In this document: piece after piece, positions 1,274 to 53,430 of the stretch | Position numbering within the stretch: position 1 is the first letter of the stretch | Layout: each line of letters starts with the position of its first letter | DNA from: Sminthopsis crassicaudata | Lineage: Eukaryota | Assembly (NCBI RefSeq): GCF_048593235.1 | Contig: NC_133620.1 | Coordinates: forward strand, 158,536,852-158,600,851 | Length of the DNA stretch: 64,000 nt | Reading direction: 5' to 3' | Notes under the pieces: model-generated | What the model saw: only the letters and a program-made list of their open reading frames with translations | Database searches by the model: none | Told to the model about the DNA's origin: nothing | Translations under genes and position numbers: made by a program

Positions 1274-3925
1274 GACTAAAGGGAAGGAAATTTCCCCTTT
1301 AATAATACTTATTTCCTTTGAAATAAAGAGATTATTTATGCCAGTATTTATCATAAAATCATAACTCTAGGACTGGAAGGGACCTCCAGTTTCCTCATTT
1401 CACAGTTGAAGAATCTAAGGCAAAAGTACATAAGAGACTTCCATAATCTAAAAGTAGGAATCAACAGATATGAGTTCTTTGTATTTCAGATGCAAAATTT
1501 TCTCTAGAAAGGGTTAAAAAAGTTCATTTCATGGAAAGTTAAACATGCTTTTTTTTTTTTTTTTTTTTTTTGGCTTTATGTAATGTATAAGATATTCTCA
1601 CAAAGATTTCTATTAAATTCACTTTATTACCCACATCAGGCAAGTCTTTAGCAATACAGAAACCTTTCAGTGTTCTATATTGCCTTTTCCCAGTGGTGCA
1701 TATGAGATGAACTTCACTTGCCTGCTCTTCCCCATATGTAGAAAATCTTAGTTATGATCAACCTATTATCTAGGCCCATAGTCATTTTTTACATGCATTA
1801 AGAACCCTGAATACCCATATTTATTAGATTCCCAAGCTTTGCTTGCCTTCTTATCTCCTCTTTCCTGTTTTATCTTCTTTTTCTTTCTTTCTTTTTTATA
1901 ATTTTTATTGGAACTAGGATCTAATGTTATTATTTGAAGGTCTTAACTTTCTAAATTGTAATCTGATCCTAAAGATGACTAAATTTGAACCTTTATGGTA
2001 TCTAAAAAGATGAGGAATTTTTTTTTTTAAAGAAGATTAGAGAAATTTAAAGATGAGAATTCCATGATCATTAAAGGAATGCTTTAACATCCCTGGTGAT
2101 CATGGGATTATTCTGGCAGAGGTCAGGGAAGAGTGCGCTTTCCTGAAAAATTATTTTTACCAGTGTTAGGAATACATTCCTATTTTGGATGGACTCATTA
2201 TGGCCCCTCTTATTTAAGGAAAAAACTCAACAGGGTTATATGCCAAAATTATTACAAAGATCTTTTGAAAAATAAAGATTGGAAGAGAAAAGCAAAATAT
2301 TTTGTGTTGCGTTGACTTACAGGAGAAGTAAAATTAGAGAAAGTTTAGGAATTGTTATCATTTAAATAATGAATTATAAGTATAATTTTTTTCATGACAG
2401 AATCTCAGAACTGTTTTTTTTTTTTAAATCTCATTTGCACAATTCATTATCAAACCACCCTCTCTGTCATCCAGAAAGAATTCAAATGAAGGCGAATATC
2501 AATATGGAGAAAAATAGCAAGCAGGGATTTTAGAGAAATTAGAGAAATTTACTGATGTTAATTTTATTATTAGATATATATCCTCATGGTATGATGGAAA
2601 GAAAGAGAACTTAGTCTCATACAGGTTTCTTGCAGTTGTCAGAGCCAAAACTTTTAACTTAGACACAATGACTGAAATTCCAGTGTTACCTCTACTTGTG
2701 ATATTGTTTCTCATTAAAAAGTGTGTGTTAAAGGGGTGGAGATACAAATTTATTTCTTTTTTTGTCTGGTCTAGTATTAATTCTCTATTGGCTTAATGCT
2801 TGAAAAAGTGCCTTTGTTTATTCACAATGATTTTTGGATTATTTACTTATGTCACATCTAGCAGACAATGCACTTAGTTTTTAATGAACAAAGACATGTT
2901 TTTAGAAACAAAGAGAGCTGTTGAAATGTGACAGAAGGGAATTTTCCTAGATTTACCCCAGAGTTGGAACAGGATACTTGGCTGTGTAATGTGATGAGTT
3001 TACAAGATTTCAAAAATCTGATAAGTCAAAAATTTGGTCAGTTGCCATAAACCTATACTTCTATTTAATCTTGAACTCAAGCATTATATTTCATTTGAAA
3101 CACTATGATTTAAAACAGGCATTGTGACATAGAAACTTAAACTTAAGCTGCATAAAGGACTCACTGTTTTGGAGCTTATCCCTATTATGAATTTTGTAGT
3201 TTGTGGTGGAATGGCACCTTTTAGAACATTAAGCCACAATTTTAAAATAACTTGACTTTTCAGAGTCTTTGTATATTTAAAAAAAAAAATTAAATTAAAA
3301 AAAAATCAACAACCCTAAGCTTCTTGAGGTTTTTACAATATAGGACCCTTATTCAGGATAAAAGTTTATAATATAACAGTTTTTTCAGCTAAATAACCTT
3401 TCACTTTCCTCCTTGCATTTATTTTCTTTAAAAATGTTTTAACATGAATAATAGAAAAGAATTTTAAAATTCTTAAAAACTCAAATTATGTTATTCCCCC
3501 CCAACTTGATCCTGATAATATCATACTTTCCCCCTGCCTCCCATATGCATGAAAATCATTAAGCAGTAAGTGAATTTCTATGACAACTTAACCAATCTCC
3601 TATTCCTTTCTCTAGTGAAACAAACAGAAATGCTTTTACATTTTACTCTCTATGCAAATGAAATATACACATAGCATTAAAATTAACTTTGGAATTTACA
3701 TGAACTCAAAATATCTGGAAATAGCAGGAACTTGAAAATTGCTATAAAATTGTTATAAAATATTTTATATAGAATTTTGGATTTAAATGTTCTGTGCTTT
3801 CAAATAAAAGTTGAAAGTAATGTTAACATTACATCTTATTCTCGAATATGCATAGTTGAATAAACAAAAGATTCTTTTAAATAATAACATTTCCCCCTTC
3901 TTCCTGTTCTCTCTACCTGATATAG

Positions 3926-4050
3926 AATGTGATAAACTGAGGAGAGATGGTTATCGAAGCTCTCAGTACTATTCTCAGGGACCGACCTTCTCTAAAGCCA
4001 GCTCAGCTTGTGACACCTATAAAGATGAAGATGAAGAAAGTAATCGAAAG
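3926..4050 (+). CDS. NHSL1: NHS-like protein 1, internal coding exon (first in window; phase 1 to 0)
   Basis: tag acceptor at 3923-3925, gtaaag donor at 4051. Encodes (E)CDKLRRDGYRSSQYYSQGPTFSKASSACDTYKDEDEESNRK, matching the recalled NHSL1 segment ECDKLR.DGYRSSQYYSQGPTF. Confidence 0.95.
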
Positions 4051-4622
4051 GTAAAGTCACAAATCAAATGAATGTTGAAAGGTTATTACATTAAATTTGA
4101 CTGTGCACTTGTAGGTATTTCCAAAACAGTCTAAAGTAGTCAATGTGAATTCAAATTCTTGCTCTGCTGTTTACAAAGTCTAACGTAAGCAAATTATTTC
4201 CTATCTCTGTGCCTTCATTTTTGATGGTTCTCTAATATCCTTTTTGCTTTTAAGTCTTGTGATTGTCATTCATATTCTTTATACTGATCAAGAATAAAGA
4301 CTAGACAACAGCCTAGATTAACAATATGTAGTCTAATTCTATTTTAAATTTGGGGTTTCCTTTCTTTGTAGTTTCCATTCTGTGATAATATCCTTGGGGT
4401 AATCATACTTATTAATTTTCAAGGTAAATAAAAATAAGTTTGCTTTTCTTTTTGTTAAGGCTGGAATGAAGATAAAGGTATAAAGGATTGTAGGAATGTT
4501 GCCAAAGTGTTTTATATTAAAGTAATATTGAATAACACACTAGTTATTCAAACAAAAGCTTCATTAGTTTTCTATAGTTTGTCACAGTTTAAAAATCAGT
4601 TTTAGGCTTTAAGGGACTATGA

Positions 4623-4657
<35 letters not shown>

Positions 4658-5812
4658 ACAGACATAGATATAAAAATGTTTGGGATGGGATCCCATTAAT
4701 GTCAGAAATGTAATATTTTTATACCTAAATAATTAAAATCAGAATTAAATATGCTTGTTAGTAACTTGTTTTTGTTTGTTTTTTAATACTGTTGTTAAAT
4801 ATTCAGTTTTTATAAGAGCTTTATATTGCTGATACTTCACTTTCCTTGAAGGATCTTCTTTGATCTTTATATTTTATAAGTGGATTGGATATAATAATAA
4901 CCAATAGTTTTAATTGGGCTGTATAATATATTAAAGACTTCATGTACCACAACCTAGATATTAAGGAAAACAGGATGATTTAATTTATAGACTGTACCCA
5001 AGAGCTGTGTTCATCTTTTCCAAGATTAGAAAACTTTGGAATTCAGTTCCATTGGTTTCTACCCCAGATTAATGGTCCACTGGACACCAACAGCACCTTT
5101 TAGAGAACTGCCTATATTTTAAAAATAAACACAGTTTCATGTTAAAGAGGAACATTAAAAGTTTAGGATAATTGTACATTTACTGATAGGATCAAGCTAG
5201 TAGATTCAATTGCTATAAGGTTCCTGTTCAAAAAAATCAACAAACATTTATTGCTTACTGTGTGCAAGGCAATAATCCTTGTTCTGAGAATACAAATACA
5301 AGCAAAAAGAAAAATTCCTGTTCCTGAAGGAAATTACAGTCTAATTATGGAAGGCAGTATAGGAAAAGGAGCTAAAAGTTGTAGGATGATGGAGAAGAGA
5401 ACTTGATGGCAAAGTTCAGATAGTCAGAAGTGGAACCAGGAGAAGACTAAAGGATGGCCTGTCTCAACCCTTCCTCAAAATCGAAGTTCTGGGAGGCTTG
5501 CAGCAAGAAGAGAGGGCCATTTTACCAATGGGAGATGAAGGGTTCTTCCTGGGTTAGTTAGCTTTTCTCTATTCTATAACCATAGATCCTTTAACCCCAA
5601 ATTGCTCACTTTTCATTATGAGCTATCACAAGAGAAACTGATGGAGGAAATATACAAAATCATCAGTAGTATAGGAACAACAAAGTACATGTGTTTCTGT
5701 AGTCAGAGATGCTAGTATTATTTTTATATATCAAAACCACCATATGCTCGTGTCCCTGTTGATCCTAGATGTTTCTTCATTAATAACTGTTCTATAGGAA
5801 TATAAGGCTTCA

Positions 5813-5945
5813 TAATATAATGGAAAGAACAGTTAGACTGGGAATCAAAAAAGCTGAATTCTAAGCTCAAACCTCTCCCTCTAATTAGCTTTGAATAAAT
5901 TGCTTAATCTCCCCAGGGCTTCAGTTTCTTCATCTATGATATGTA
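5813..5945 (+). mobile_element. MIR-family SINE fragment
   Basis: Degenerate CORE sequence ending in cttcagtttcttcatctat. Confidence 0.6.
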
Positions 5946-8048
5946 GTGGAAAGATCACTAATATTAGAATGCAATTGTAGGTTCTAATTCTACCTCTGAC
6001 TCTCAGGTATGTTATTCTGGACAAGCCTTGCTTCTTTCTAAACTTTAATTTAATAAACTTTCAAACATATAGATTGGAATTAGCTTAGAGGATATCTAGC
6101 CTAATTAATTATTATTATTATTATTATTATTTACAAATGAATAAATTGAGGCAAAAGCATTAATTGAATGTAGCTTCTCTGATTCCAAAGGTAGTGCTCT
6201 TTCCTTTGTATCATAATTCCCTTCTGGCTTCAGTGCCTATAATCTAATCGATTAGATGATCAAAAAGTCCCCTTTGGAAGAGTATTCTGAAGCAAAAGTT
6301 TTTCTTTCTTTCTCATTCCAGCACTTGCTACTCCATCACTAAAATCTTCAAGGGTTTCTAAGTTATCTTCTGTACTATGTTTTGTCATTTCTGTGTTTCT
6401 TTAACCATGAAGCTGACTAATGAGGCTCTCCATCTTCCTACTTTTTAAAAGTAACATTTGGCATGTTAAAATATTTTTAGTTGCTACTGAAATTCAGGGT
6501 GGTAATATTGTGATAAATGATGTGATTTTTAAAAAAAAGTTTTATGAAACACAATTATATTAAAATAACTTTGAAATTATTACATGAATGATTTTTATCA
6601 AAGCAAATTTTAGTTAAAAAAATAGAAAACCTGACCTTTTATAAGTATGTCTATACATTTTGTCATATTTCTTAAACTATTCACATGTTTCTTAAGACAA
6701 GCTCTTGCTTAATACTCAGATCAACTAAACACTAATTGCCTTAAATAATGCTATTAAAAGCTCAAGAATATTATTCTGATTTTTTTCATTAGTGTGTTGA
6801 CAAAAATAAAATTATAATTTTGAATAGATTTTATTATAATAAAATTAGCTTTTTTAAAATAGCATTTCAGTATAACTTTAAAACCATTTACTGCATAATA
6901 AATACTTTAAAAATGGCATTCAAACTATAATTTGGTACAAAGTAGATAGATGGGCAGATGGGAAACTGACAGCTTTGAATAATACTGATTAATGGAGCAC
7001 TTTTAACTGTCACTCCTATCTTAAAGCATAGTAAGATTTTACCCATTAGTAAAATTGCCTCATAAGCCTTTTAGCCTGCTACAGACTTGAAAATTTTTTC
7101 CCTAAAGTTTGAGCTCGTGGGGGAGGAAAATAGAAGAGTAGTGTGTTTGATTTTTTCAAAATACCACTTTAATTCTTCTGTCTCATGACTAGGTTGATTA
7201 TAAGGTGATTGATTTTGCAGCCCAGCATTTCTCAGAGATCACTTACTCAATTATAAAACAGTGTCATCTATTTCAGTGGAAGTAGTACTTCTCTAATGGT
7301 GAAATTAAGTACTGCTTAATTTCCCCCCACCCCTCCAAAAATAACAGAAGAACAGAAGATATGTTGATTATATCAGGAACTTTTTATTCATTTATTTCCC
7401 TTTTTTAGTTTCTTTAATACTCTGATACAAATTCTATTTGATTACATTAAAAATGCGATGGTTGACAATGCTTCACTAACATATGAAAAAATTGTGGGAA
7501 AATTTATCACTAGTATTCATGAAATATTAAAAGATTTAGGAAAAGTAATCTAGCTCATTTAATAAATAATTCCATTGAGGATTTGTTGGATCACACAGAT
7601 CAAGCTCATACTATTTGGGCATTATAGGTAATGGGATTATAGAGAAACTAAGCTAAAAACAATGATAACCATAGCAGACAATCTCAGAAGGAAAAGATTA
7701 GAACATTCTTTTCTTAGGTCCCACAAATTTCATGATCTTAATTAAAACATATCAGATAATATCGTCATAAGAGTTATTGGATTTGAGATAAGATCACATT
7801 TACTACTATGTATATGGATTTAAGCTTTATAAGCTTTCCACCAGGAAAAGAAAATTGAGGCAATAACAACAAATTCCCACTTTACAAACAATTTGTGTTT
7901 TAAATCATAAAGAAATCATGACCCTGGTTTTCTGCATAATTACATCCTTTACATTGTGCTTTTTATATTTTGGTGTACATATGTGTATTGTATGTTCTTG
8001 TTGAATCTATTTCTCCTTATTCTTTCTTTTCTCTCCTTTCTCACTCAG

Positions 8049-8120
8049 CAGTCTAGTTTAGGCTGCCTCTTTGAGTGTTGTGTTAACGTCTGCAGTGACT
8101 TGGTCCCATGGAATTTCAAG
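8049..8120 (+). CDS. NHSL1: Candidate alternative (cassette) exon of NHSL1, 72 nt, QSSLGCLFECCVNVCSDLVPWNFK
   Basis: Long pyrimidine tract, AG-free from 7913 to 8046, CAGCAG acceptor, AAG|gtacct donor. No stop in phase 0, matching the flanking exons. The ECC...PW..K pattern resembles the recalled NHS alternative exon. Confidence 0.7.
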
Positions 8121-8304
8121 GTACCTGTCCACTTGCCCACCAGCTGTCATACATACAGCTTGATACCATTTTATTTACATCTTCCACCTTTTTTTCACTC
8201 ATAACTAATGAATTAATCATACTGTACTTTGCTATGGAATCTTGTAAGATTGCCAAATTAGGAATCAGTATTTGATGCTTTTAGTAATAAAGTACTAAAG
8301 CAAC

Positions 8305-8500
8305 ATGATATAATAGGTAAGGTCACAAACCCTAGATATTAGTCTCCAGTATGCTGCCTACTGGCTGTGACCATGGGCAAGTCACTTAACCCCCTTGCAA
8401 CTAAATGGTGAATAATACTTAGGTACTATGTGCCTCATAGGGTCATTGTGAAGAAAGTGCTAAATAAAACATAAATTGCTCTGTAAATATGAGCTTTTAG
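8305..8500 (+). mobile_element. MIR SINE
   Basis: ggctgtgaccatgggcaagtcacttaacc core. Confidence 0.7.
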
Positions 8501-8879
8501 TATTATTGGATATACATTGACCAGGATGTGCTAACAGAATACATTAGAATAACATCAGCATTAATATGGTAGAGTTCATATAGTATTTTCATTAGGAATG
8601 GCATTAAATGTCAAAGAAGGGGACACTAACAATAGGAAAGCTTAGTAAAGGCAAATAAAAGATTTTTAAAGAGAATCCCATAATATGAGAATGGATTTTA
8701 AACTCTCATCTACTATGTTGTTCATTAACAAACTAGAGAAATAAAAGTATTGTCTAATGTTGTTGAAAAATCATATAATTAGAAGGAAATCAAATAGGAT
8801 ATATCTGATTCACAAAATGGAACCATTGAATAAAGATGAGAATGACTACCTCCAGAGGTTTACAACTAAGAATAGACTT

Positions 8880-9810
8880 TGGTAGCTGGTTGATTAGCCT
8901 GCTATGTGCTAGATGTTATACCATATTCTGAAGATGCAAAGAAAGGCCAAAAACCCCAATCATTGCTCTCAAAGAGCTCAGGGGAAACAATATGCAAATA
9001 GTTATGCACAAACAAATGTAGGGATACAGGACACAGGATAACTTGGGACTAATCTCAGAGAGGTACTAAGAATAAGGATGAATAAGAAAGGCTTTTTGCA
9101 GAAAGTGAAACTTTAAAGGGAGTTAGAGAAGCTAGGAAATAGAGATGAGGATGGGGAGAATTATAGGCATGAGGTTGACCAATATAAACATTGAGTCTGG
9201 AGATTGTCATGTTCAAGTAAAAGGTTGAGTGCGTGAAGTGGAGTAAGTTTTAGGAAAACTGAAAAGATAGGAAGGGGTCAGGTTATGAAGGACTTTGAAA
9301 GCCAAGCAGATGATTTCATATTTGATGCCGAAATAATAGAGAACCACTAGAGTTTATTGAATTTGAGGATGAGATAATCAGATCTGCATTGGATGAAGAT
9401 CAATTTGACTGCTGAATGGGGGGAAACTAAGGCGGGGAGGCCAACCAGTAGATTATTCCAATAGTCCAGGTGTGAATGATGGAGACCTATCCCATGGTGG
9501 TAGCAATGTCAGAGAAGAAGAAAGGTAAAATTGAGATAAGGGGGGTGAGAGAGTGAAGAGTTGAGGATGATAGCTAGGCTGGAACTATAGGATGACTAGG
9601 AAGATGGTAGTATCTTTGATAGTAATAGGGAAGTTTAGAGTCAGGGGAAGAGGGTTTAAGATGAAAAATAATGACTTCAATTTTGGACATGTTGAGTTTA
9701 AGATGTGTATCAGACATCCAGTTCAAGATGTCTGAAAGGCAGTTAGAGATGTGAGACATGAGATCTGGAGAGAAGTTGTGGCTGGGCAAGTAAATCTGAG
9801 AGTATACTTA
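8880..9810 (-). mobile_element. LINE-2 remnant
   Basis: The minus-strand ORF 9574-9789 reads ISNCLSDILNWMSDTHLKLNMSKIEVIIF, typical of the L2/CR1 reverse transcriptase C-terminus. An L2 3' end motif lies near 8900. Confidence 0.85.
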
Positions 9811-10201
9811 TGCAAAGTATATTTAATGCATACAACAGAAAATGTTAAAACAATTTCCTATTTACATATACCATTACATTATACTACTTATATTTATAGC
9901 CCATTTTAGTTACAAAGCACTCAACATTCACTGTACCATTTGTTCCTTATAACAACATAGTGAGGTAGGTAGAGCATATATTTTTTATTGCTATTCTGTA
10001 AATGAGAAAGCTAAAGTTTAGAGTGGAAGAAGGGGTGTAATGTCAACTAGCCCAAGAGAATAGACAATTAAGTGACAGATTTGGAACTAAAGTCAAGTGA
10101 TCTAACACTGGCTTCTTTATCCTTCCCACCATAGCATAGCATAGCATAGCATAGTGTCTCCCATTTAAAAAATTCTCAGTAAGATAAATGATAGTATAGA
10201 T

Positions 10202-10376
10202 CAGGGATCAGCAAACTACAATCAGCATATGCCAGTCTGCTGCTGCTTTTGTAGCTAAGAATGGTTTTTCCATTTTAAATAAACTTTTATTTTATTTTTT
10301 AAAAATATAAAATGCAGTTTTAGCTCAGAGGATCATACAAAAATACGCTTTGGGCCAAATTGGCAGAGATGATCCT
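10202..10376. mobile_element. hAT-Charlie type MITE (MER58-like)
   Basis: Starts cagggatcagcaaact, contains agctaagaatggttttt, ends in a degenerate gggccaaattggc terminus. Confidence 0.6.
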
Positions 10377-11364
10377 TACTATACAGTAAAATCTAATAAT
10401 TGATTGCAAAATGTTACTGTAAGGTAACTGTAACGTTACTGTTAGGTTATGCTAAATTTTGCTGAAGCAATGAAGTGGCACAACATTTTAGAAAACCAGA
10501 ATTAAAATTAGGAAAACCTGAGTTCACATCATACTTGGTTTGATGATATTAGTGAAGTCATTTAAATTTTCTGAGTCTCAGTTTCCTCATCTGTAAAATG
10601 AAGGTAATAATAATACTAGCCCCACCAGCCCCAAATGATTACAGGGAAAGGAGCAAATGGAATAAAAGTAAAATATTTTGTAAATTTTAAAGTTTTATTT
10701 AATGCTAGTTAACTTTGCATAATTTCTCAGTATTTTTTGGTCTAAAATGGGTGGGGAGGAAGAGAAAGAAGAGAAATACATCATTATTTAAACATCTGGG
10801 TCTTGATCCATTCCACTCCCAGGAATTTTCATTACTCTTTGAAATTCTCAAGCCCATTTGTTAAATAACTGTTAGTCTGAATTACACAATACTCTATGAG
10901 CAAATATTCTTTGGAAATTTTATATAACAATTATTCCTTCTTATGTCCCAGACAGTATTCTGGGAATGTCTTATAGGAAGTAAAGAAGCTTTAAGCAAGA
11001 AATAATAATGGAAAATTTGTATAACAGCATTTTCATGAATGTTAATATTTTAGGAAGAAAGAAGGCATTCTGAAAATTTGCAAATTGATCATATTGGTTT
11101 ATATTATATTTATATTTCTTTTCCTTTGAAATTAATTTTTTCATTTAGACCCAGGGTGGTAATCTCTCAGGGTTTGAACGTAGATCCTTTATGACTCCAG
11201 TGGCTCCTCCTTGGTGCACTAAAATCTCAGATAAATATTCTGATCTTCTGAAGAAAGTGTATTGGAGGAGTACACATTTTACAGATATTTCTGCCATCTT
11301 AATCTAGGACGTCTTTAGAGAGTAGGTAGTCACATAGCAAGGGGCGGGGGGAGTTAGTAATATT

Positions 11365-11880
11365 TCTAAAGCACAGGGTGACTGTGTCACTCCCTACTCA
11401 ATAAATCCAATGCATTCTTAGTTACTTTGAGGGTGTATTACAAACTTCCTTTTTAGCATTGAAAGCCTTTCTCAGTCTGGCTTCAACCCATCTTTCCTGC
11501 ATTATTATACATTACCCCCCTTCACATACACGATGGTCCAGGAAAACTGACCTTTTTCCTGTTTCTCATGCAAAACATTCCTTCTCTCTTTCCCTTTCTT
11601 TGTACAAGGTGTTCTCCATGCCTGAAATATATTTTTCTTGTGATCTATTCTTCGTAGAATTATTTATTTCTTTGAAAGTTCAACTAATACACTTGTTATG
11701 TTACTGCCTCTGCCCCTAATCATCTGAACATATTTTTTATTTACTAATTTATTTACTATATGTTTTATCCCTCCTCATTTAAGGAGATGGGAACTGTTTG
11801 ATTTATGTCTTTGTGTCTCTAGTGCATAACACAGTACCTGGCACATAGTGGGTGCCTAATAAATGCTTGCTGAGTGGCTT
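11365..11880 (+). mobile_element. LINE-2 3' end
   Basis: Ends acagtacctggcacatagtgggtgcctaataaatgcttgctga, the typical L2 terminus. Confidence 0.8.
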
Positions 11881-12399
11881 GTTTTTCCTTTCCTTACTTC
11901 AGTCAACTGCAAAAATGCATGCTCCTGCTTACCTTCTTCCCTAAGCAAGATAATATGTTTCTCCCTCCTTTCTTTACAAGGACAGTAAGCAGTCTGATAT
12001 AAATTATACATATGCCAGAAGATAACTAATATTAATTAGTAATAACTGATTTATGCAGCACTTTAAATGTTTGCAGAAGACTTTATATCAACATTTAATT
12101 TGATTCCCATAATATTGTAATTCAGATAGTACAGTAGGTTTTATTTTCCCCATTTTTACAAAATGAAGAAACTGAGACTTAAAGATGTTAAGTGATTTGA
12201 CCACTGTCATACACTTTGTTAATTTCAAGGGGGAAATATGAAACTAAATTTCTCCTGTCTGTTTGTGGTATTCTATCAATCACAGGCTCTCCCTCCTATT
12301 CTTACTTTGAGAATAATTGTTACAAAGAAAAAGCAAACAAATGGCTGGGTAACAAACAAACAAACAAACAAACCCAAGTACATGTACCCAAGCACTTAA

Positions 12400-13500
12400 A
12401 ACTTTAAGGATTGTGTAGGCAATGACATTTGTGTTTTGAAGTTGACTAGGAGATCTTGTGAGATTCAGGTATGGAGGGGAAGGTATATACTACTCAAAAT
12501 GTAGAGGGCCAGTTGTGCAAAGGAAAATAAGAGTGTAATGTATAAAGAATAGCTAACAAGCCAATTTGATTAGAACAGAGAGGTATGGTGGGTGTGGGTG
12601 TGTGTGTGTGTGGGTGTGTATGGGTGTGTATGAAATAAGACTGGATAGATTGATGGGAGGGCAAATAGTGGAGGGCTTTAAGTTCAAAGGTGGCACATTA
12701 ATATATTTTCTCTTAGAGGAAGCCACTAAGGATTTTTTTTTTTTAAACCGAGGGTTATGTGAGCATCTTTGTTTTAATAATGTCATTTTGGCAGCTGTGG
12801 AGGGCAGAGACTTGGAAACAAGGAACCTAATTGGGAGACATAAATCCACATGAAAGGTTAAGGGGTTTTCAAAATTGGTAGTAATTGTAGATGGAGATAA
12901 GGATATATTAAAGATGGTGTGGAGGTAGAATTAACAAGACTTGGCAGCTTATAGGATGTAGGACGAGGGAGATGGAAGAGTCAAGATGATGCCAAAGTAA
13001 AAACTTTGGTAACTAGGTAATGCCCCCAACCTAAATAAGGTAGTTTTGTGAAAGATTGAGTTTTGGGAAAAATATGAACAATTATGGGCACTGATCAGAT
13101 TGTGGTTATTTGGTTGAGTGGAGTGAAGATGGAGTTCGTTGATATGAATTTGGAACAAGGAACCTCTACTTAAAATATACAGGAAGCAAATTGCTTAAAC
13201 TGGAATGAAATTGAGAAATTGATTAAGTAGATATCTCATTAGAGATAATAATGAAAAAGTATGGGATCTAGTGAGATCATAGAAGAGTTAGAAGAAAATA
13301 ACTTCCTGGACAGAGTCTTAAGGGATTCCTATACTTAAAAGGTGGAAGAAGGATAATGATTCAGCAAAGAAAAATCAGAAAGCCAAAAATGGAAACCAAG
13401 GAAAGGAAGAGTATCCAGGAAGAGGCAGATATTCACCAGTATCACTCACTGAAAATAAATCAAATAGTAGCTTGAGGACTGAAATCATTAGATTATGTTT
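12400..13500 (-). mobile_element. LINE-2 remnant
   Basis: Purine-rich reverse L2 motifs (gtggaggtagaattaacaagacttggc, gaagagtcaagatgatgcc). Confidence 0.7.
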
Positions 13501-13929
13501 GATTAAGAATTTGAAATTCAAGATATATTTAGAGTCCTAACATAATTACATACTCTATCCATTAGCATATATGTATGTAGCAGCACTTTTTGTAGTAGTT
13601 AAGACTATGAAACAAAATAAATGAGGAATGGCTAAATAAATTGTGAAGAATATGAAGAATACAAAGAATCATGGGAAGACATATAGGAAATGGGACAAGA
13701 AACCAGGATAGCAATATATCTTCCACTTTATTATAGAAACTAGAATGCCTTTAAAAATAGTTTATAACAGGGATAACTTGAGCCAGCTTTATTGGGATAT
13801 CCTAAAGGTATTTGTCACTATTATCCACTAAATATGTACATATATGCATATATACCTATGTATCAGTTCTGTTTTTTCAGGAATTTATTTTGTCTTATAA
13901 TGACAGTAAATTAAGTTTATGTTGTGATA

Positions 13930-14130
13930 TACTTATGTTACATTATTTAATGCTCTCAATAGCTTTTTGAGGTAGGATGAGCATTCTTACCCCCATTTTG
14001 CAGATGAATAAGCTGAGGCTCTCTAACATTGTGATCTGCTTAGAGCCTTAGGAAGAGCAGGTGGCAGAAAGGAAGTGAAGATATAGATCTTTTGACTTGT
14101 TATCCAATGTTCTTTCTACTACACTACTGT
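13930..14130 (-). mobile_element. MIR SINE
   Basis: ccccattttgcagatgaataagctgaggct, the reverse MIR core. Confidence 0.65.
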
Positions 14131-15581
14131 CTTTTTATTGTGATTTTAGTGCTGTTTTTCAAATTTTATTGAGCTGAGTTTTAACTGAACTAGCAACCAT
14201 AAATCCTGATCAGTCATTTCCTCCACTGATTATATGACTATAATCAAATTATCTTATTTCTTTGATCTTGTTTAATAATCTATTCTACCCAACTCATTTT
14301 AGAGGATTGTTTCAAGAATCAAATAAGAAAATAAGGAAACAGAATTAGCTGTGTAAGCTTTAAAGCATTTTTTTAATGTCAAGGCATGTTTTTAATATTG
14401 TTGTTTGGGAAAGTAAAGTAATTTAAATGGTAAGATAACTTTAATAGTTGACAATCACCAATACTATTTTTAATAATAATAATAATATCATAACAGTTTT
14501 TCTATATATTTTGTTAGTTGTTTCCTCACAAAATATTACAATGAAATTAGAAATTGTTCCAGGCAGACTTTTAAAAGAGAATGTAGTTAGAATACATTTT
14601 TTTAAAGGAATTCCTATTCAGGTACTGTGTTTTTTTCCCACAAAAACAAAAAGTAGCTTGATATTCCTATAGCCTTTTCTTGTCATTGAGTAAAGTTAAA
14701 CTGTGCCTTATTTAAGTTCATCACCACTTGATTGCCAAACGAAGCTGTCACTTCAAATATTTTTTAAGTTGCTATAGGAAGAAGAACATAAAAGGCTATT
14801 TTGTTAGTATGTGAATATTTATCAAAGTTGACACAGCAAGCAATGTTTCCCATGGAGCTCTGATAAAGTTCCAAGTAAAGTTTATTAAAGCTTGATGTAC
14901 TTTAACAATTTCATACTCTTTCTACATATTTATTTCTGTTTTGAGAAGAACAGGAATAGTTGATCTGCAATAGTGTTTCTTATAAGAACCACCTGCAGAT
15001 TCCAAGTTCAGAAGAAATTAGAATAGGCATAAAAATTGTGGTATGGACAGATTTTTTGGGGGGGAGGGGCTAGATTCAATAGTTATTTATTAAAATGGAA
15101 ACTATAATTCCTAAGCAATAGTGTTTCTTCAATTTGTCTCTCTAGGCTCATGGCAGAATAGCATAGACTCTCAGAATTGTAAAGAATTTCAGAGGACCAC
15201 CTAGTTAAATTTAAATCTGAATAAGAATTTTTAACATACCTGTCAAATCGCCAGATACTTTGCTAAATCTTTGCTAAAAAACTTCCCAGTGAGAGAGAAT
15301 CCATTTTTTCCCCTCTAGCTAGCCACTCTAGGCCTTGGTTTCTTTATCTGTAAAATGAAGCACTTGTGTGCTAAGGTTCCTTCTAGCTCTGAATCTGTGA
15401 CCTTATAAATCTCTGATGGTACGCTTAATCCTTTTGAAATTACATCTCAGATTAGGTCCAGTTTTCTGGCTTTCAACTTTTATTTTCTGAATCTATATTG
15501 TATCACCAAGAGATGAGTTAAATAAAAGTTTTTTTTTTTTCCTCAGCCATTTACATGCCATATATCCTCTTTTTCTCTCAG

Positions 15582-15774
15582 TGTTCCATCTCTTCCTCAG
15601 AGGAAGAAAAACTTATTACTACGACTAGAGCCAGAACTCCAACTTCAAGTGACTTATCTGACATTAACACCCAAACAAACTGGACCAAGTCACTTCCGCT
15701 GCCAACACCAGAGGAGAAGATGCGACAGCAAGCACAAACAGTCCAGACAGATGTGGTTCCTATTAACGTTACCG
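15582..15774 (+). CDS. NHSL1: NHSL1 internal coding exon (phase 0 to 1)
   Basis: ttttctctcag acceptor, G|gtatgc donor. Encodes CSISSSEEE...TQTNWTKSLPLPTPEEKMRQQAQTVQTDVVPINVT, the NHS-family TNW.K.LPLPTPEEK motif. Confidence 0.96.
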
Positions 15775-16429
15775 GTATGCTTTTTTATAGTTCATTCAAG
15801 TTTGGTGTGCTTCTGGGGAACATATGCAAATATAGGCTAGTCTTTTAAGATTATTTTTTCTCACATAATTTTACCACTTTTACATTTAATTATAGAGTAT
15901 AAAATAAGACTTTTATCTATAAGCCAGCATTCAATTCAATGAAAAAATGCTATTATTTTCCTGTCTTATTGAAGAACTAATTAATGGTATAATTTGATAT
16001 TTCAGCCATTCAACTTGAGAAAGGTTTTTTCATAGACATGACCTGTTATCTTTTAATATTTCACTTGTGAAAAAATTTCCCTTAGATTCATAGGTTATTA
16101 TTTTAGATAAAAAATTAACTTACTTAGAGAGTCTATAGCTCCAAATCTGAATCTTACAGTTAAAGAAACTGAGACATGGAGAAGTAATAAGGACTTGCCC
16201 AGGATCACATAGTAGGAATGGGAATCTAGAGTATAGATCTTCTAATTTTTGCTTTTCAGTGCTCTTCCCAATGTGACTTGCAGTTTTTTAAGTGTAATCT
16301 TTATAGTAGTAGAGATTTGCTACTCACCTTAAAATTTTTTAAATGGGAGAAACATTACTTATCTCAGGAAGAAATATCTACAGAAGCTATTAAGACCTAA
16401 GAATACCAAGAAAAGTATAGTAGTTACTC

Positions 16430-21084: not shown

Positions 21085-21224
21085 NNNNNNNNNNNNNNNN
21101 NNNNNNNNNNNNNNNNNNNNNNNNNNNNNNNNNNNNNNNNNNNNNNNNNNNNNNNNNNNNNNNNNNNNNNNNNNNNNNNNNNNNNNNNNNNNNNNNNNNN
21201 NNNNNNNNNNNNNNNNNNNNNNNN
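21085..21224. other. Assembly gap (140 N) overlapping an NHSL1 exon
   Basis: N run seen directly. Confidence 0.99.
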
Positions 21225-22465: not shown

Positions 22466-22627
22466 NNNNNNNNNNNNNNNNNNNNNNNNNNNNNNNNNNN
22501 NNNNNNNNNNNNNNNNNNNNNNNNNNNNNNNNNNNNNNNNNNNNNNNNNNNNNNNNNNNNNNNNNNNNNNNNNNNNNNNNNNNNNNNNNNNNNNNNNNNN
22601 NNNNNNNNNNNNNNNNNNNNNNNNNNN
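22466..22627. other. Assembly gap (162 N)
   Basis: N run seen directly. Confidence 0.99.
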
Positions 22628-25745: not shown

Positions 25746-27391
25746 ATACACACACATGTACTATTTTTGTGTATATATACAATCATATATTTTAAAAAGG
25801 CATATAAAATAGGTATACAAATATAAACATTTACTAATAATAAGTTATAATTTTATGATTCCCCCATATTCAGTTACATGACTCTGTAGGGGTGACAACC
25901 CACAATTTTGAAAGGTTTGGGATATATGAATGTTCTTTTTCTTCTGGATAAGACTAAAGAAAAACTTTCCACAGTATCTTGGTAGAAGAAAAGAAGCTAA
26001 GCACATTGCGTTGGTACTGTGGGAAGCAGTTTTTTCCATGTAACACCTAGTATGTTATCATTACAAACTTCCTATTGATATAATCTTTCTATAGCTGGGA
26101 ATATTTTTAGAATTTTGAACATAAGATGGATGCACTCCAATGACAGCGGTAAATGGAGCAGAGGTGATAACAGAAGAGAATTTGTAGTTATTCCAAATCA
26201 GAGATGAAATATAGATGAGTGATTAAGTCATAGATAATACTATGTCATTTGAACTGGCATCATACAAGAGAGTAATTATTGTTAGTACCAATTTTATCAG
26301 TCTTGCTCAGACAGTAATACAAGATGGAAAGTGAAATTTATTTCTTATTGCGATGAGTTTTTTCCCTTATTTATTTTATCTTAGTGATTGCTATGTATTA
26401 TTTCACTTCTTCATTTCATTTTGGCAGAGTTCCTGGCTCCCTGAATTTTTTTAAGCTGCTAGTCTTTCCTGGGAAACTGGAAAGCTTTACATTTAGCTCT
26501 ACTTAGTCTTACTCCTTCATCACACTCTCTATACTTCCTTTCTCGTTTTTAGTTGTAGAATATATTTATGTTCTCTTTGATGTATAGTTCCAAGAAATAA
26601 TGACAATTTGGAAAATTCTTCACTGGATTAGAACTTTGCTTGGCAAGATTTCATCTATTCCTATTCCTTATGCCCCACCAGAAGTCACTTCTTTCTGTCC
26701 ATAGCACAACAGATTGCTATTGAAATTTTGAATGTCACCAACAGATGATTATGGTTTAAGATGGGAAGAAAATGTTTAAAACACAGATGGGTCTGCAAAT
26801 CGCATTTTTCTTCCTCAGGAATGCCTTCTTATATATAATATTAATGATATTAACACTATTCATGCAAATATGGTTCACAAATGCCACTTAAATAATCAAT
26901 TATGACTCAACCACTGACATGTTGCCACTTCTGGGAATGAGGGTCACAGACCAGAAGCGACCCTGTCTATAACCAGGAGAGCAAACTAATTCTCCTTGTC
27001 CTAGAGGTTTAGAAATACATGTAAGGTTTTTTTTTGTTTAGGTTTTTTAAGTCATCTGTGGGATATTTACTATATTTATAGAATTTAAAGGGCTTTGGTT
27101 TTTGAAAATTGTACCTAGTGCTTAATCTGTCATCAGAGAATTTGAAAATAAAGAGAAATAAGATTAATTCATGACTAGCACTTTTTTTCTTCCAGTGATT
27201 GCCAACAGATATTTGAATGCTTTAAATGTCAATGGAAAGAGGAAAAAAATCAAAGAAAAGAGGATATTTTGTTAAATTGCCCAAAAAACTGGGTAAATGG
27301 CTTTTGTACTGTATGTATATTGAGGAAAAGGTGATAAATCCAATTATAACTTTGTTTTCAAGTAATAACTGCTTTTCTGCTTTATCTCCAG

Positions 27392-30300
27392 CTACTGGCA
27401 CTAGCCAGAATGACTTCCGTGGGCACTCAATGTATGTCCCAGACCACTACTCCACCTTAGGAAGGCTTGACAATTATCGGAATGTCATTCAGCGTTCTGA
27501 AACTAGAGACTCCAGTTGTCAGACTGATGAAGTGAAAGTTGTGCCTCCTTCAATGAGAAGAATAAGGGCCCAAAAGGGCCAAGGTATTGCAGCCCAGATG
27601 AGCCAATTCTCCATCTCATCAGGGAACATGTCGGTGATGAGTGATTCTGCAGGAGTTGTGTTTCCTTCACGCCTCTACAGTGATGGAGGTTTCCATAGTC
27701 TTCCTCGCTCTGGAACAAGGTTATCCCATCATCCACTGGAGTCACCACAAGGTGTTGTTAACTCTGGAGAAGACTTGGCTAGTATTCTTTCTTACCAGAT
27801 GGGTAAGCTGCAAGTTGATGAGAACCTTGAGCAAATGAGATGTATCTCAAGGCCTGGGACATTATCAAGGCCCAAATCTGAAGAGTTGAGGCATTATGAA
27901 AGTGAAAAAATAAGCCCAGCTTGTGTTGTTTCTCCTCATGCAACTTACTCTACCAGCCTCATAGCAAATGCCACAATTTCTTCATCATCAGAGGTTATTG
28001 CTATTCACACAGTCCAGAATACTGGACAATTGGACAGCAAAATCACCAGCTCATTATCTTATGCAAAGACAATGAAGTCTAGAGACAATCTTGCCACCAT
28101 CAGTGCCATAAAAGATGATCATCAGTCTTCCGGTGGTAACTGGAGTGAGAATAGCTCTACTCGACATTCACAGACCAGCAATGTAGTCATGATGGCATCC
28201 CTCTGTGGCTCAGATGTCTCTCTGAACACTCCAGGAAGCAAGGAGAATGGGTCCCAAAATGTTGCCTATAACTGCAGAAGCAATCTGAATTTTCTAAGCC
28301 ATTCCCAGGATAGTGATGGCAAGAGTGAGTCTAGTTACTCAGGTGATAGAGCACATGGTAGCACAGAGGCCTGGGAATATAAAACCTTAGGTAATGAGAG
28401 GGCATCCCCACACAAGCCACTTTGTATTACTCCTGCTTACTCTACTCCCACTAGTAACATGAGCAACAGTAGTTTGGACCGGGCCTCAGTTAAAGAGGAT
28501 GCAAATGCAGTTCACTCCGACCATGATGGCTTCTATACTTCCATGCATATGGACTCTGGACTCAAATCAGGAAAACTGTACAATAGCAGTGATGGCTTTG
28601 GGAACCCCAGGCACAGTGTGATTAATGTTTTTGATGGGAAAGCCCAGAAAAACCAAGGTGACCAGTCACAATACTGTGATAAATCTCTGCCACGAAACAT
28701 CTCCTTAAAGAAAGCGAAGAAACCTCCTCTTCCACCTTTCAGAACAGATTCTCTTCGAAGGTCCCCTAAGAAAAAAACCCAGCCCAATGGGCAGGTGCTC
28801 AATGAGACTCTGATCGCTACCCTCCAGCATTCCTTGCAATTAAATCTGCAGCGTAAAGATAGCAGTTCCCCTTCCCAGAGCCCCTGTAGTGATTACGAGG
28901 ACCCATGGCTCCTGCGTTCCCGTAGCCAGAGCACAGTCAGCACAAGCAGCAGTATGGTGTCTGCCACAGCCCCAAACGTGTACTCTCTCTGCACAGTCAC
29001 GCCATCTCAGAGTGACACAAGCAGTGTCAAGTCAGAGTATGGCGATCCTTGGGGTTATTATATTGACTACACTGGCATACAGGAAGATCAGGGGAAATCT
29101 GGAGGAACATGTCCCCCTAGTGCTGTGGCCCCTCTGTGTGATTTTTCCACCAGCCACCTCCAGGATGGATCCAGGGCGCCTATTCCACAGGGGTCTAGTG
29201 GATTGGCCAAACCAAAGAACACTTCCCCAGAGAAGTCTCACAGGGTCACTTCTCCATCTAGTGGTTATTCCAGTCAGTCGAATACCCCTACAGCGCTTAC
29301 CCCAGTGCCTGTGTTTTTAAAATCCATCTCACCAGGAAATGGAAAATCAAAGTTGAAGCCCAAAGTGCCTGAAAGAAAATCCTCTCTGATCTCTTCAGTA
29401 TCTATCTCTTCATCTTCAACTTCCCTTTCTTCTAACACTTCAGCTGAAGGTAGTGTGAATGTGAAGAAGTTAGATTCATCCATTCCTCCTCTCTCTCCAG
29501 CACCTCTACATACTCTTGATCATTCCCCTCTTCCCCCTCCTCCTCCTCCTTTGGCAGATGTTTTGGAGCCATCCACCGTGCAACACTCCCCCATTTTCCC
29601 TCCTCCGCCACCAGAAATTCTTGCTTCTTCCTTCCTTCCAACTGATACATGCTTTCCTCTTCCCCCCACATCCTTCAGTACGCCAGATTCAGCTGCTTTC
29701 TTGCCACCACCTCCTTCGTCTCTTTTTCCCTCATCAGTTCCTCCACCTGCTCCACCTCTTGACCCCAAGTTGATGAAAGAAGCTTGGCCTTCCTTTAAAA
29801 AGTGTAGCCAGCAGGATTCTTCTTGTGCTGTATTAAAACAGCCTCTCAACCAGGAAGAAACCACTAAACCACCAATCCCCCTAATAACCACTAAAGCATT
29901 ACAGATGGTACGGTTGAGGCCAGTAAAAAAGCCCCCAGGAACATCAGGCAAACCACCTTCTGAAACAGCATCTCAGGAAAATAATTCTGTGGTTCCCCAG
30001 GGTCTGTTAAAACCACCTGCCTTGAAACACAGAGAGAGCCTCAATGGAGTGGACAGCAGCAAAGCCCAGAATGTCCCTCTTAAAAATATACTTCCATCTC
30101 CTGCAAAGGGCTCGTGTTTGGGTCAGCATAGCAGGGCAGCTGAGCTTGCCTCCCTTCAAAGGCATGGAGATGCAGTGCATCCTGAACCATGCTCTGAAGT
30201 ATCCTTTTCAGGAACAAATGCTGAAGAAGGAGTGCACACTTCTGGACAGGATGAGGAATCTCCCAGCCTCAGGACTGCCTTGCACCAGGAGCAGCCCAGC

Positions 30301-30742
30301 TCTCCAAAAAAGACACATGGCTCCTCACCCAGCAGGAAACCACCTCCTATTTCAAAGAAACCCAAACTGTTCCTTGTCGTGCCACCTCCGCACGTAGATT
30401 TCACAGCAGAGAAAACAACCAAAGTGAATGAAAGTGTCAGCAGCCCGACCAGGGGAGAGGTGGTTGATGTGAATGGCAGAGAGGCAAAAGGGGGATTTGC
30501 AGCAGGACCTGGTTCTGCCGAGGCAGACTTGGAAAGCTTGGTGCCAGAGGGAGGAGCTGCAGGATCCACCTTCCTTGCAGAAGTGCAAGTGGATGTCTAT
30601 ATGGTACAGCCTGATGCATCACCAGCTCAAGGAGCTCCCAAGCAGGAGGAGCCAACCACTTCAGATGAAGGCAGCAAGACAGAGAGCAAGGAAGACACTG
30701 GTGGTAACTTGGGCAACCCCCCTCCTCTAGAGGATGGAAATA
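27392..30742 (+). CDS. NHSL1: NHSL1 giant internal exon (3351 nt, phase 1 to 1), Ser/Pro-rich region
   Basis: tttatctccag acceptor, A|gtaagt donor. Uninterrupted ORF with NHSL1 motifs PDHYSTLGR, RDSSCQT, VPPSMRRIRAQKGQGIAAQM, KKPPLPP, SPSSGYSSQSNTPT, polyproline runs and RKPPPISKKPKL. Confidence 0.97.
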
Positions 30743-52739: not shown

Positions 52740-53430
52740 ACATAGAAATTAATCAATAAACATTTATTAAGCACTACTTTATGCCAGCTGCTATGATACA
52801 AAAGAAAGTCGAAAAGACAGCCCCTGTCTTCAACATTTCTTCTAATGGGAGNNNNNNNNNNNNNNNNNNNNNNNNNNNNNNNNNNNNNNNNNNNNNNNNN
52901 NNNNNNNNNNNNNNNNNNNNNNNNNNNNNNNNNNNNNNNNNNNNNNNNNNNNNNNNNNNNNNNNNNNNNNNNNNNNNNNNNNNNNNNNNNNNNNNNNNNN
53001 NNNNNNNNNNNGCCAAACAGAATTTTGTATTTGATCCTGGAAGCCAGTCAAATTTGTTGAGTAGGAAGAAAGTTAACACACATGGTCAGACTTGCACACT
53101 AGGACAATTTTAATTAAGAGCTGAGTTTACCAAGTAGGACAGGGACATGATCATACCAGAGCTTTAAGAAAATCTTTAGTGACTGAATGGAGGACAAATT
53201 GGAGTAGAAGAGAGACTTAAGAAAGATGATCCCACCTATAGGTTATTATTATAATATAAGCATGAAGTGATAAGGTGATAAGGTGGTTAGGTAGTAGCAG
53301 TGTTCTAAGAGAGAAGGGGGACATATTTGAGAGATGTTGTAAAATTGAAATTGACAATAGGTTGAAGATGAAGGATGAGAGAGAGTAAGGAATCAGGTGA
53401 GGATTTTAAGATAGGAACATGATAGGATAG
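52740..53430 (-). mobile_element. LINE-2 remnant spanning a gap
   Basis: Reverse L2 3' end (caataaacatttattaagcact) left of the gap and L2-like purine-rich sequence to its right. Confidence 0.65.
52852..53011. other. Assembly gap (160 N)
   Basis: N run seen directly. Confidence 0.99.

Follow-up and report, generated by a model that had tools for sequence, protein, structure and literature searches.

The sequence analyzed here is a 64-kb window (64,000 nucleotides) from the fat-tailed dunnart, Sminthopsis crassicaudata, and all coordinates refer to it. The gene it contains is NHSL1, on the + strand, an assignment that follows from the 3.4-kb large exon at 27391-30741, which is 100% identical to S. 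crassicaudata NHSL1 RefSeq isoform X5. Two constitutive exons frame the region of interest. The upstream one, at 3926-4050 (+), encodes ..ECDKLRRDGYRSSQYYSQGPTF..EESNRK, matches residues 188-229 of RefSeq isoform X1 at 100%, and ends in phase 0 with the donor AAG/gtaaag after 4050. The downstream one, at 15582-15775 (+), starts in phase 0 after the acceptor cag/TGTTCC and encodes CSISSSEEEKL..TNWTKSLPLPTPEEK..PINVTG. The 11.5-kb intron between them, from 4050 to 15582, is in phase 0 at both sides. The window also holds three runs of N, at 21085-21224, 22466-22627, and 52852-53011. Isoform X1 of the dunnart includes an annotated 44-aa alternative exon (GENFDRQASLRR...) that is missing from isoform X2. 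No match to this exon was found in the readable window sequence from the TNW exon to the large exon, and it may lie under the N run at 21085-21224 or the one at 22466-22627.

Within the 11.5-kb intron, positions 8049-8120 form a segment of 72 nt that is free of stops in phase 0 and translates as QSSLGCLFECCVNVCSDLVPWNFK. It is preceded by an AG-exclusion zone of 134 nt (7913-8046, +, with AG at 7911 and then at 8047), which ends in a long pyrimidine tract rich in TCTT/CTCTC, with 84% C/T over the 56 nt at 7991-8046 and 85-95% as scored in the scan of the intron. The tandem NAGNAG acceptor cAGcAG (8047-8051, +), with AGs at 8047-8048 and 8050-8051, provides two in-frame acceptors spaced 3 nt apart, of which the AG at 8047-8048 would give one extra Gln. 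On the 3' side stands a weak donor, AAG/gtacct, cut between 8120 and 8121, together with a conserved intron flank (8121-8180, +). Four Cys of the peptide fall within a span of 11 residues, with LVPW..K after them, and the exon that comes next, at 15582, itself begins with a Cys. An earlier note on this DNA had described the frame, the AG-free zone, the tract, the CAGCAG acceptor, the donor, the phase, and the addition of four Cys beside an existing one, and the window sequence bears out each of these. A GTG-started ORF of 82 codons (7956-8204) runs from the pyrimidine tract through the cassette into the downstream intron and is a mechanical ORF only; a protein database search with the genomic ORF 7956-8201 returned zero relatives.

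The splice-like signals by themselves exceed chance only weakly. A scan of the intron for AG..GT intervals of 30-210 nt that are open and in frame yielded 258, a number that favors the view that the segment is a chance pseudo-exon in a long AT-rich intron; just two of the 258 have both an upstream pyrimidine content of 80% or more and an AG/GTR donor, and these are the 8049 and 8052 forms of this exon. Homology settles the question. When the cassette peptides of bird (SSLLDCISQSCISACCNLVPWSKK), turtle (SSLLDCISRSCISTCCSLVPWSLK), and eel (PSLLGCLTQSCLTVCCHYNPWDKK) NHSL1 were compared with all six frames of the 64-kb window by tblastn, the sole significant match of each was 8052-8120, with E values of 1.7e-5 for bird and turtle and 5.9e-5 for eel, and the next-best match was at 0.3 or worse. 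Shoebill genomic DNA likewise had a unique blastn match in the window, at 8007-8164 (170 nt, 72%, E 1.2e-14). The segment is therefore not a product of chance: its matches to the cassettes of bird, turtle, and eel and to shoebill DNA, the last of these extending over an identical donor and the flanks, are unique and significant, and they refute the pseudo-exon explanation, to which we assign a negligible probability. The proposal in the earlier note of an NHSL1 cassette exon in the right intron and phase is upheld.

The alignment with shoebill also places the ends of the exon. Over the exon, 52 of 69 nt (75%) are identical between dunnart and shoebill; outside it, identity is 67% in the 21 nt upstream, 67% over +1..+30, and 53% over +31..+60, so that conservation is highest at the exon and right beside it and reaches background by about 60-100 nt. 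The bird exon and the dunnart segment have the same donor, AAG/gtacct, and the same acceptor context, ctcactca(a/g)cag/tctagt. Because shoebill has a single acceptor, caacag/tct, corresponding to the dunnart AG at 8050-8051, the orthologous dunnart exon is 8052-8120 (+), whose 69 nt (23 codons) encode SSLGCLFECCVNVCSDLVPWNFK; a start at 8049 gives 72 nt with a leading Q. The acceptor proposed earlier, at 8049, thus has its AG in the dunnart sequence, but the orthologous acceptor, judged by the single one of birds, is that of the 69-nt form. The upstream AG at 8047-8048 is due to an A>G change specific to the dunnart lineage, which created the NAGNAG. The dunnart CAGCAG is of the same type as other NAGNAG tandem acceptors, whereas the bird has the downstream AG only. 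The dunnart cassette is also one codon shorter than that of birds (SSLGC, compared to SSLLDC in bird).

In sauropsids and fish, this exon is already part of gene models. NHSL1 isoforms of birds and turtles differ by 24 residues, an insert flanked by ..EIE[QR]K on one side and C[SP]V.S.EEEKL on the other. A protein search restricted to the cassette gave 140 clusters, with at least 120, all birds, among the matches listed, and the cassette is found in Alligator sinensis (SSLLDCISQSCLSICCSLVPWSLK) and in teleost NHSL1 (eel, smelt, salmon, and pike) as well. These records come from RefSeq/Gnomon and B10K models, for example Haliaeetus albicilla X1/X4/X8, Chelonoidis abingdonii X5, Alligator sinensis X1, and Anguilla rostrata. 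The cassettes of Oncorhynchus kisutch and of Esox lucius nhsl1a are shorter (RSKLLDCLSQSCFSVCWRRK) and are without the xxxP segment before W; the O. kisutch model bears the name "tyrosine-protein phosphatase non-receptor type 23-like", an apparent misnomer for an NHSL1 fragment. The dunnart segment and the 24-aa exon of sauropsids and teleosts are alike in gene, intron, phase 0, and length class, and 11 of 23-24 residues are identical, including three Cys and LVPW..K. The dunnart copy is unlike them in its extra upstream AG, in the change of CC to CS, and in the replacement of the basic residue before the terminal K by F. Taken together, these comparisons indicate that the dunnart segment is the orthologue of the NHSL1 24-aa alternative exon of birds, turtles, the Chinese alligator, and teleosts. 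Metagenome and genome collections, scanned with patterns of bases conserved between bird and dunnart, yielded either nothing or matches due to chance only, namely L002 (a bacterial MAG) and L003.

A related cassette occurs in the paralogue NHS. NHS exon 3a is an alternative exon of 21 aa that distinguishes isoforms of 1630 and 1651 aa (Brooks et al. 2010, PMC2876887), and it is also described in PMC2571945. Like the NHSL1 cassette, it lies at the equivalent junction, immediately before the TNW.K.LPLPTPEEK exon. A family-wide HMMER comparison found F.S.RS.SPTECC..TPWS[RK]K at this junction in NHS of whale shark, a teleost, a frog, and alligator, so that exon 3a is conserved from shark to alligator, and human cDNA documents it. 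The 21-aa peptide that the earlier note had given for human NHS is exactly the insert of alligator NHS, FNSTRSPSPTECCHMTPWSRK. The aligned cassettes have a common C-terminal core, C-C-x-x-x-P-W-x-[KR]-K, in which W and the terminal K are invariant. The bird and eel NHSL1 cassettes have this core (CCxxxPWx[KR]K) in common with NHS exon 3a, and those of turtle and alligator NHSL1 conform to it too. The N-terminal halves are unrelated (FNSTRSPSPTE in NHS exon 3a versus SSLLDCISQSCIS), and the number of Cys is two versus four. In the dunnart the core reads C-S-D-L-V-P-W-N-F-K, which departs from the motif: it retains P, W, and the final K but has neither the second C nor the basic residue. A core common to the dunnart and NHS exons, as first suggested, therefore holds for PW..K but not for CC, which is CS here, or for [KR]K, which is FK. 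By tblastn, the alligator NHS 3a peptide had no match to dunnart 8052-8120.

Pfam already accommodates the NHS form. The family PF15273 (NHS) includes the alternative cassette as match states at profile positions of about 92-117; the NHS 3a peptide alone aligns to positions 95-115 (E 0.024), and the dunnart isoform that lacks the cassette (residues 69-226, aligned to PF15273 positions 1-182) skips 24 profile positions at the cassette. The dunnart and bird NHSL1 cassettes, searched alone, had no match to PF15273, and a WDR47_COR hit to the dunnart peptide in the Pfam scan was sub-threshold and spurious. The alignment core and the Pfam profile together support the suggestion in the earlier note of an ancient, family-wide cassette that includes the NHS alternative exon, and one that is in databases already, in gene models and in Pfam.

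The sampled mammals differ from this pattern in their annotation. About 110 mammalian NHSL1 isoforms, drawn from more than 20 species and including the dunnart RefSeq isoforms X1-X6, were compared at this junction, and not one has an insert there; the same annotation pipelines that record the cassette in sauropsids and fish do not record it in these mammals. The sample comprised marsupials (dunnart, Tasmanian devil, antechinus, two opossums, sugar glider, brushtail possum, wombat, tammar wallaby, and monito del monte) together with platypus, echidna, elephants, manatees, dugong, aardvark, horseshoe and roundleaf bats, and lynx; one bat transcript assembled by Logan was included, and human and mouse lay outside the sample. 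The description of the exon as hidden consequently applies to the sampled mammals but not to birds, several turtles, Alligator sinensis, teleosts, or, for the NHS form, Pfam. One interpretation is that the dunnart segment is a relic, a true orthologue that goes unspliced in mammals, or at least in this lineage, and is drifting. The changes of CC to CS and of KK/RK to FK in the core are in line with this, as is the lack of the cassette in every sampled mammalian isoform. Absence from gene models is nevertheless weak evidence of absence, because annotation is patchy even in taxa that clearly have the exon: the cassette is missing from models of Pelodiscus and from several crocodilian isoform sets. 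The models of caecilian, Xenopus, lungfish, horn shark, and bowfin lack it as well.

Several other records touch this part of NHSL1. A 2025 NHSL1 preprint reports that "exons 3 and/or 6" are skipped among 25 human GenBank isoforms; the content of its exon 3 is unstated. A QKI-regulated exon of mouse Nhsl1 was considered as a counterpart of the cassette and rejected, as it is a 132-nt exon downstream of the TNW exon. The protein P0330 (220 aa), a placental-like NHSL1 fragment, has an unrelated insert of 97 aa (LSHPGSSCPEPSS...KKDSM) at exactly this junction, which represents either other exons of this intron in some placental or an artefact of the model.

RNA data were read at the exon and around it. 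Run X1 is clearly RNA: one of its contigs, of depth 126, matches precisely 3924-4050 and has a loose end that reads the preceding exon, while the intron is at a depth of about 12. No joint into 8049 or 8052 was seen in runs X1, X5, X17, and X25, read as assembled contigs, which drop rare isoforms. Contigs across the exon were colinear with the genome and unspliced in X17 (7915-8187), X25 (7947-8141), and X5 (8045-8277). Run X1 had zero depth across 7900-8300, though the run index lists all sampled words there; presumably, it is unreadable at the exon through a record that was filtered out. The runs containing the exon, which belong to three studies, have it together with its intron flanks, and a run search with the exon only returned no run registered as RNA. 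Four runs of metatranscriptomic RNA from organism B (X9 and X11-X13) contained 0.16-0.22 of the words of 7900-8300 (401 nt) and were missing from the exon-only search; the sequence that they have in common with this interval is intron flanks or repeat. The RNA outcome for the dunnart cassette is one of no support, not of refutation, and the lack of splice joints in the four runs is a further point in favor of an unspliced, drifting copy. So is a T>C difference at 8052 (+), which puts Pro in place of Ser as the opening residue of the orthologous exon, immediately after the acceptor, and was present in two runs of one study (X17 and X25) and not in run X5; it is likely a polymorphism in dunnart stocks.

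Measures of constraint bear on the same question from both sides. In the dunnart copy the frame is still open, the splice sites at both ends and the pyrimidine tract persist, and the number of Cys is still four; the sole indel relative to bird is in frame. In neutral simulations at the observed substitution density, 15% of copies retained the frame and AG/GT, and of these, 15% had at least four Cys. With the in-frame indel included, the neutral chance of intactness is about 5%, which is unlikely but not extreme. Cassette identity between dunnart and eagle is 46%, compared to 48% for the adjacent constitutive exon-3 tail, and since the divergence of the cassette equals that of neighboring constitutive coding sequence, there is no sign of extra relaxation. 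A dN/dS of about 0.67 relative to bird, without an excess of third-position changes, is what a drifting exon might show. The retained features, the match in divergence to adjacent coding sequence, and the conservation peak on the exon and its immediate flanks, decaying beyond about 60 nt, argue against drift. An unspliced copy might still look intact if marsupial sequences change slowly, if the loss was recent, or if some constraint at the nucleotide level persists, and we regard this explanation as a real possibility that falls short of being probable.

The substitution pattern itself suggests a different kind of constraint. The dS relative to bird is low (0.41), and the differences are spread evenly over the three codon positions (6, 7, and 4), which points to constraint at the nucleotide level, as in regulated exons. 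Alternatively, this pattern could reflect a conserved non-coding element, an intronic regulatory or splicing-control sequence whose open frame is incidental in mammals, and the full presence of the stretch with its intron flanks in several runs from the three studies fits such an element as well. Regulated alternative exons, however, typically show such nucleotide-level constraint too, the block of conservation falls on the exon together with its splice signals, and the stretch is demonstrably coding in other vertebrates, so that we consider a purely non-coding element very improbable.

On balance, we lean towards the view that 8052-8120 (optionally 8049-8120) is the dunnart orthologue of the ancient NHSL1 cassette and is live, with low inclusion. 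Such an exon would be included at low levels or in restricted tissues and would have been overlooked by mammalian gene models. A weak conserved donor, conserved flanks, a long AG-free zone, and a TCTT/CTCTC tract are typical of repressed, tissue-regulated cassettes. The corresponding features in the dunnart, with a tract that resembles PTB sites, would suggest regulated inclusion, possibly of neural or muscle type. Inclusion would insert 23-24 residues, with the four Cys and then LVPW..K, into the disordered linker that connects the conserved block at the N-terminus with the TNW..LPLPTPEEK motif.

The simplest hypothesis for the role of the inserted peptide is regulated S-acylation or membrane association. 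By its sequence character, the dunnart cassette is a Cys cluster in a hydrophobic or basic context, with a hydrophobic-aromatic-basic tail after it, within a cytosolic protein active at the lamellipodial membrane, and a cysteine-cluster module for S-acylation or membrane association would be its most likely biochemical role. Palmitoylated Cys clusters are known in cytosolic proteins, for example in the SNAP-25 linker and at the GAP-43 N-terminus. These clusters resemble the NHSL1 cassette in their closely spaced Cys, in a hydrophobic context flanked by basic residues, and in their location in a disordered protein that acts at the plasma membrane, with zero sequence homology, so that the comparison is one of how they might work. 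Acylation would alter the site or the tightness with which this Scar/WAVE-complex regulator is held at the plasma membrane. The literature that we consulted contained no link of NHS or NHSL1 with palmitoylation. A broader proposal would be that the cassettes of NHS 3a, NHSL1, and the fish paralogues form a regulated S-acylation switch, tethering these Scar/WAVE-complex regulators to the membrane, of which mammals keep a working NHSL1 copy used in a narrow cell type or stage and missed by gene models; we think this unlikely.

Work on isoforms of the NHS family has focused on alternative first exons. We found no literature on a role of the conserved Cys-rich cassette, whether NHS exon 3a or its NHSL1 counterpart, and none describing the NHSL1 cassette. 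The dunnart segment is an unannotated new copy within a known exon family and, as it stands, mainly a refinement of annotation, since exons of this type are already in public gene models and Pfam. At the same time, an intact marsupial copy carries the known range of the exon into mammals and shows that mammalian annotation is incomplete at this point. Should the exon be in use, and should it act as an acylation module, it would provide simple control by splicing over the membrane attachment of a WAVE-complex regulator.
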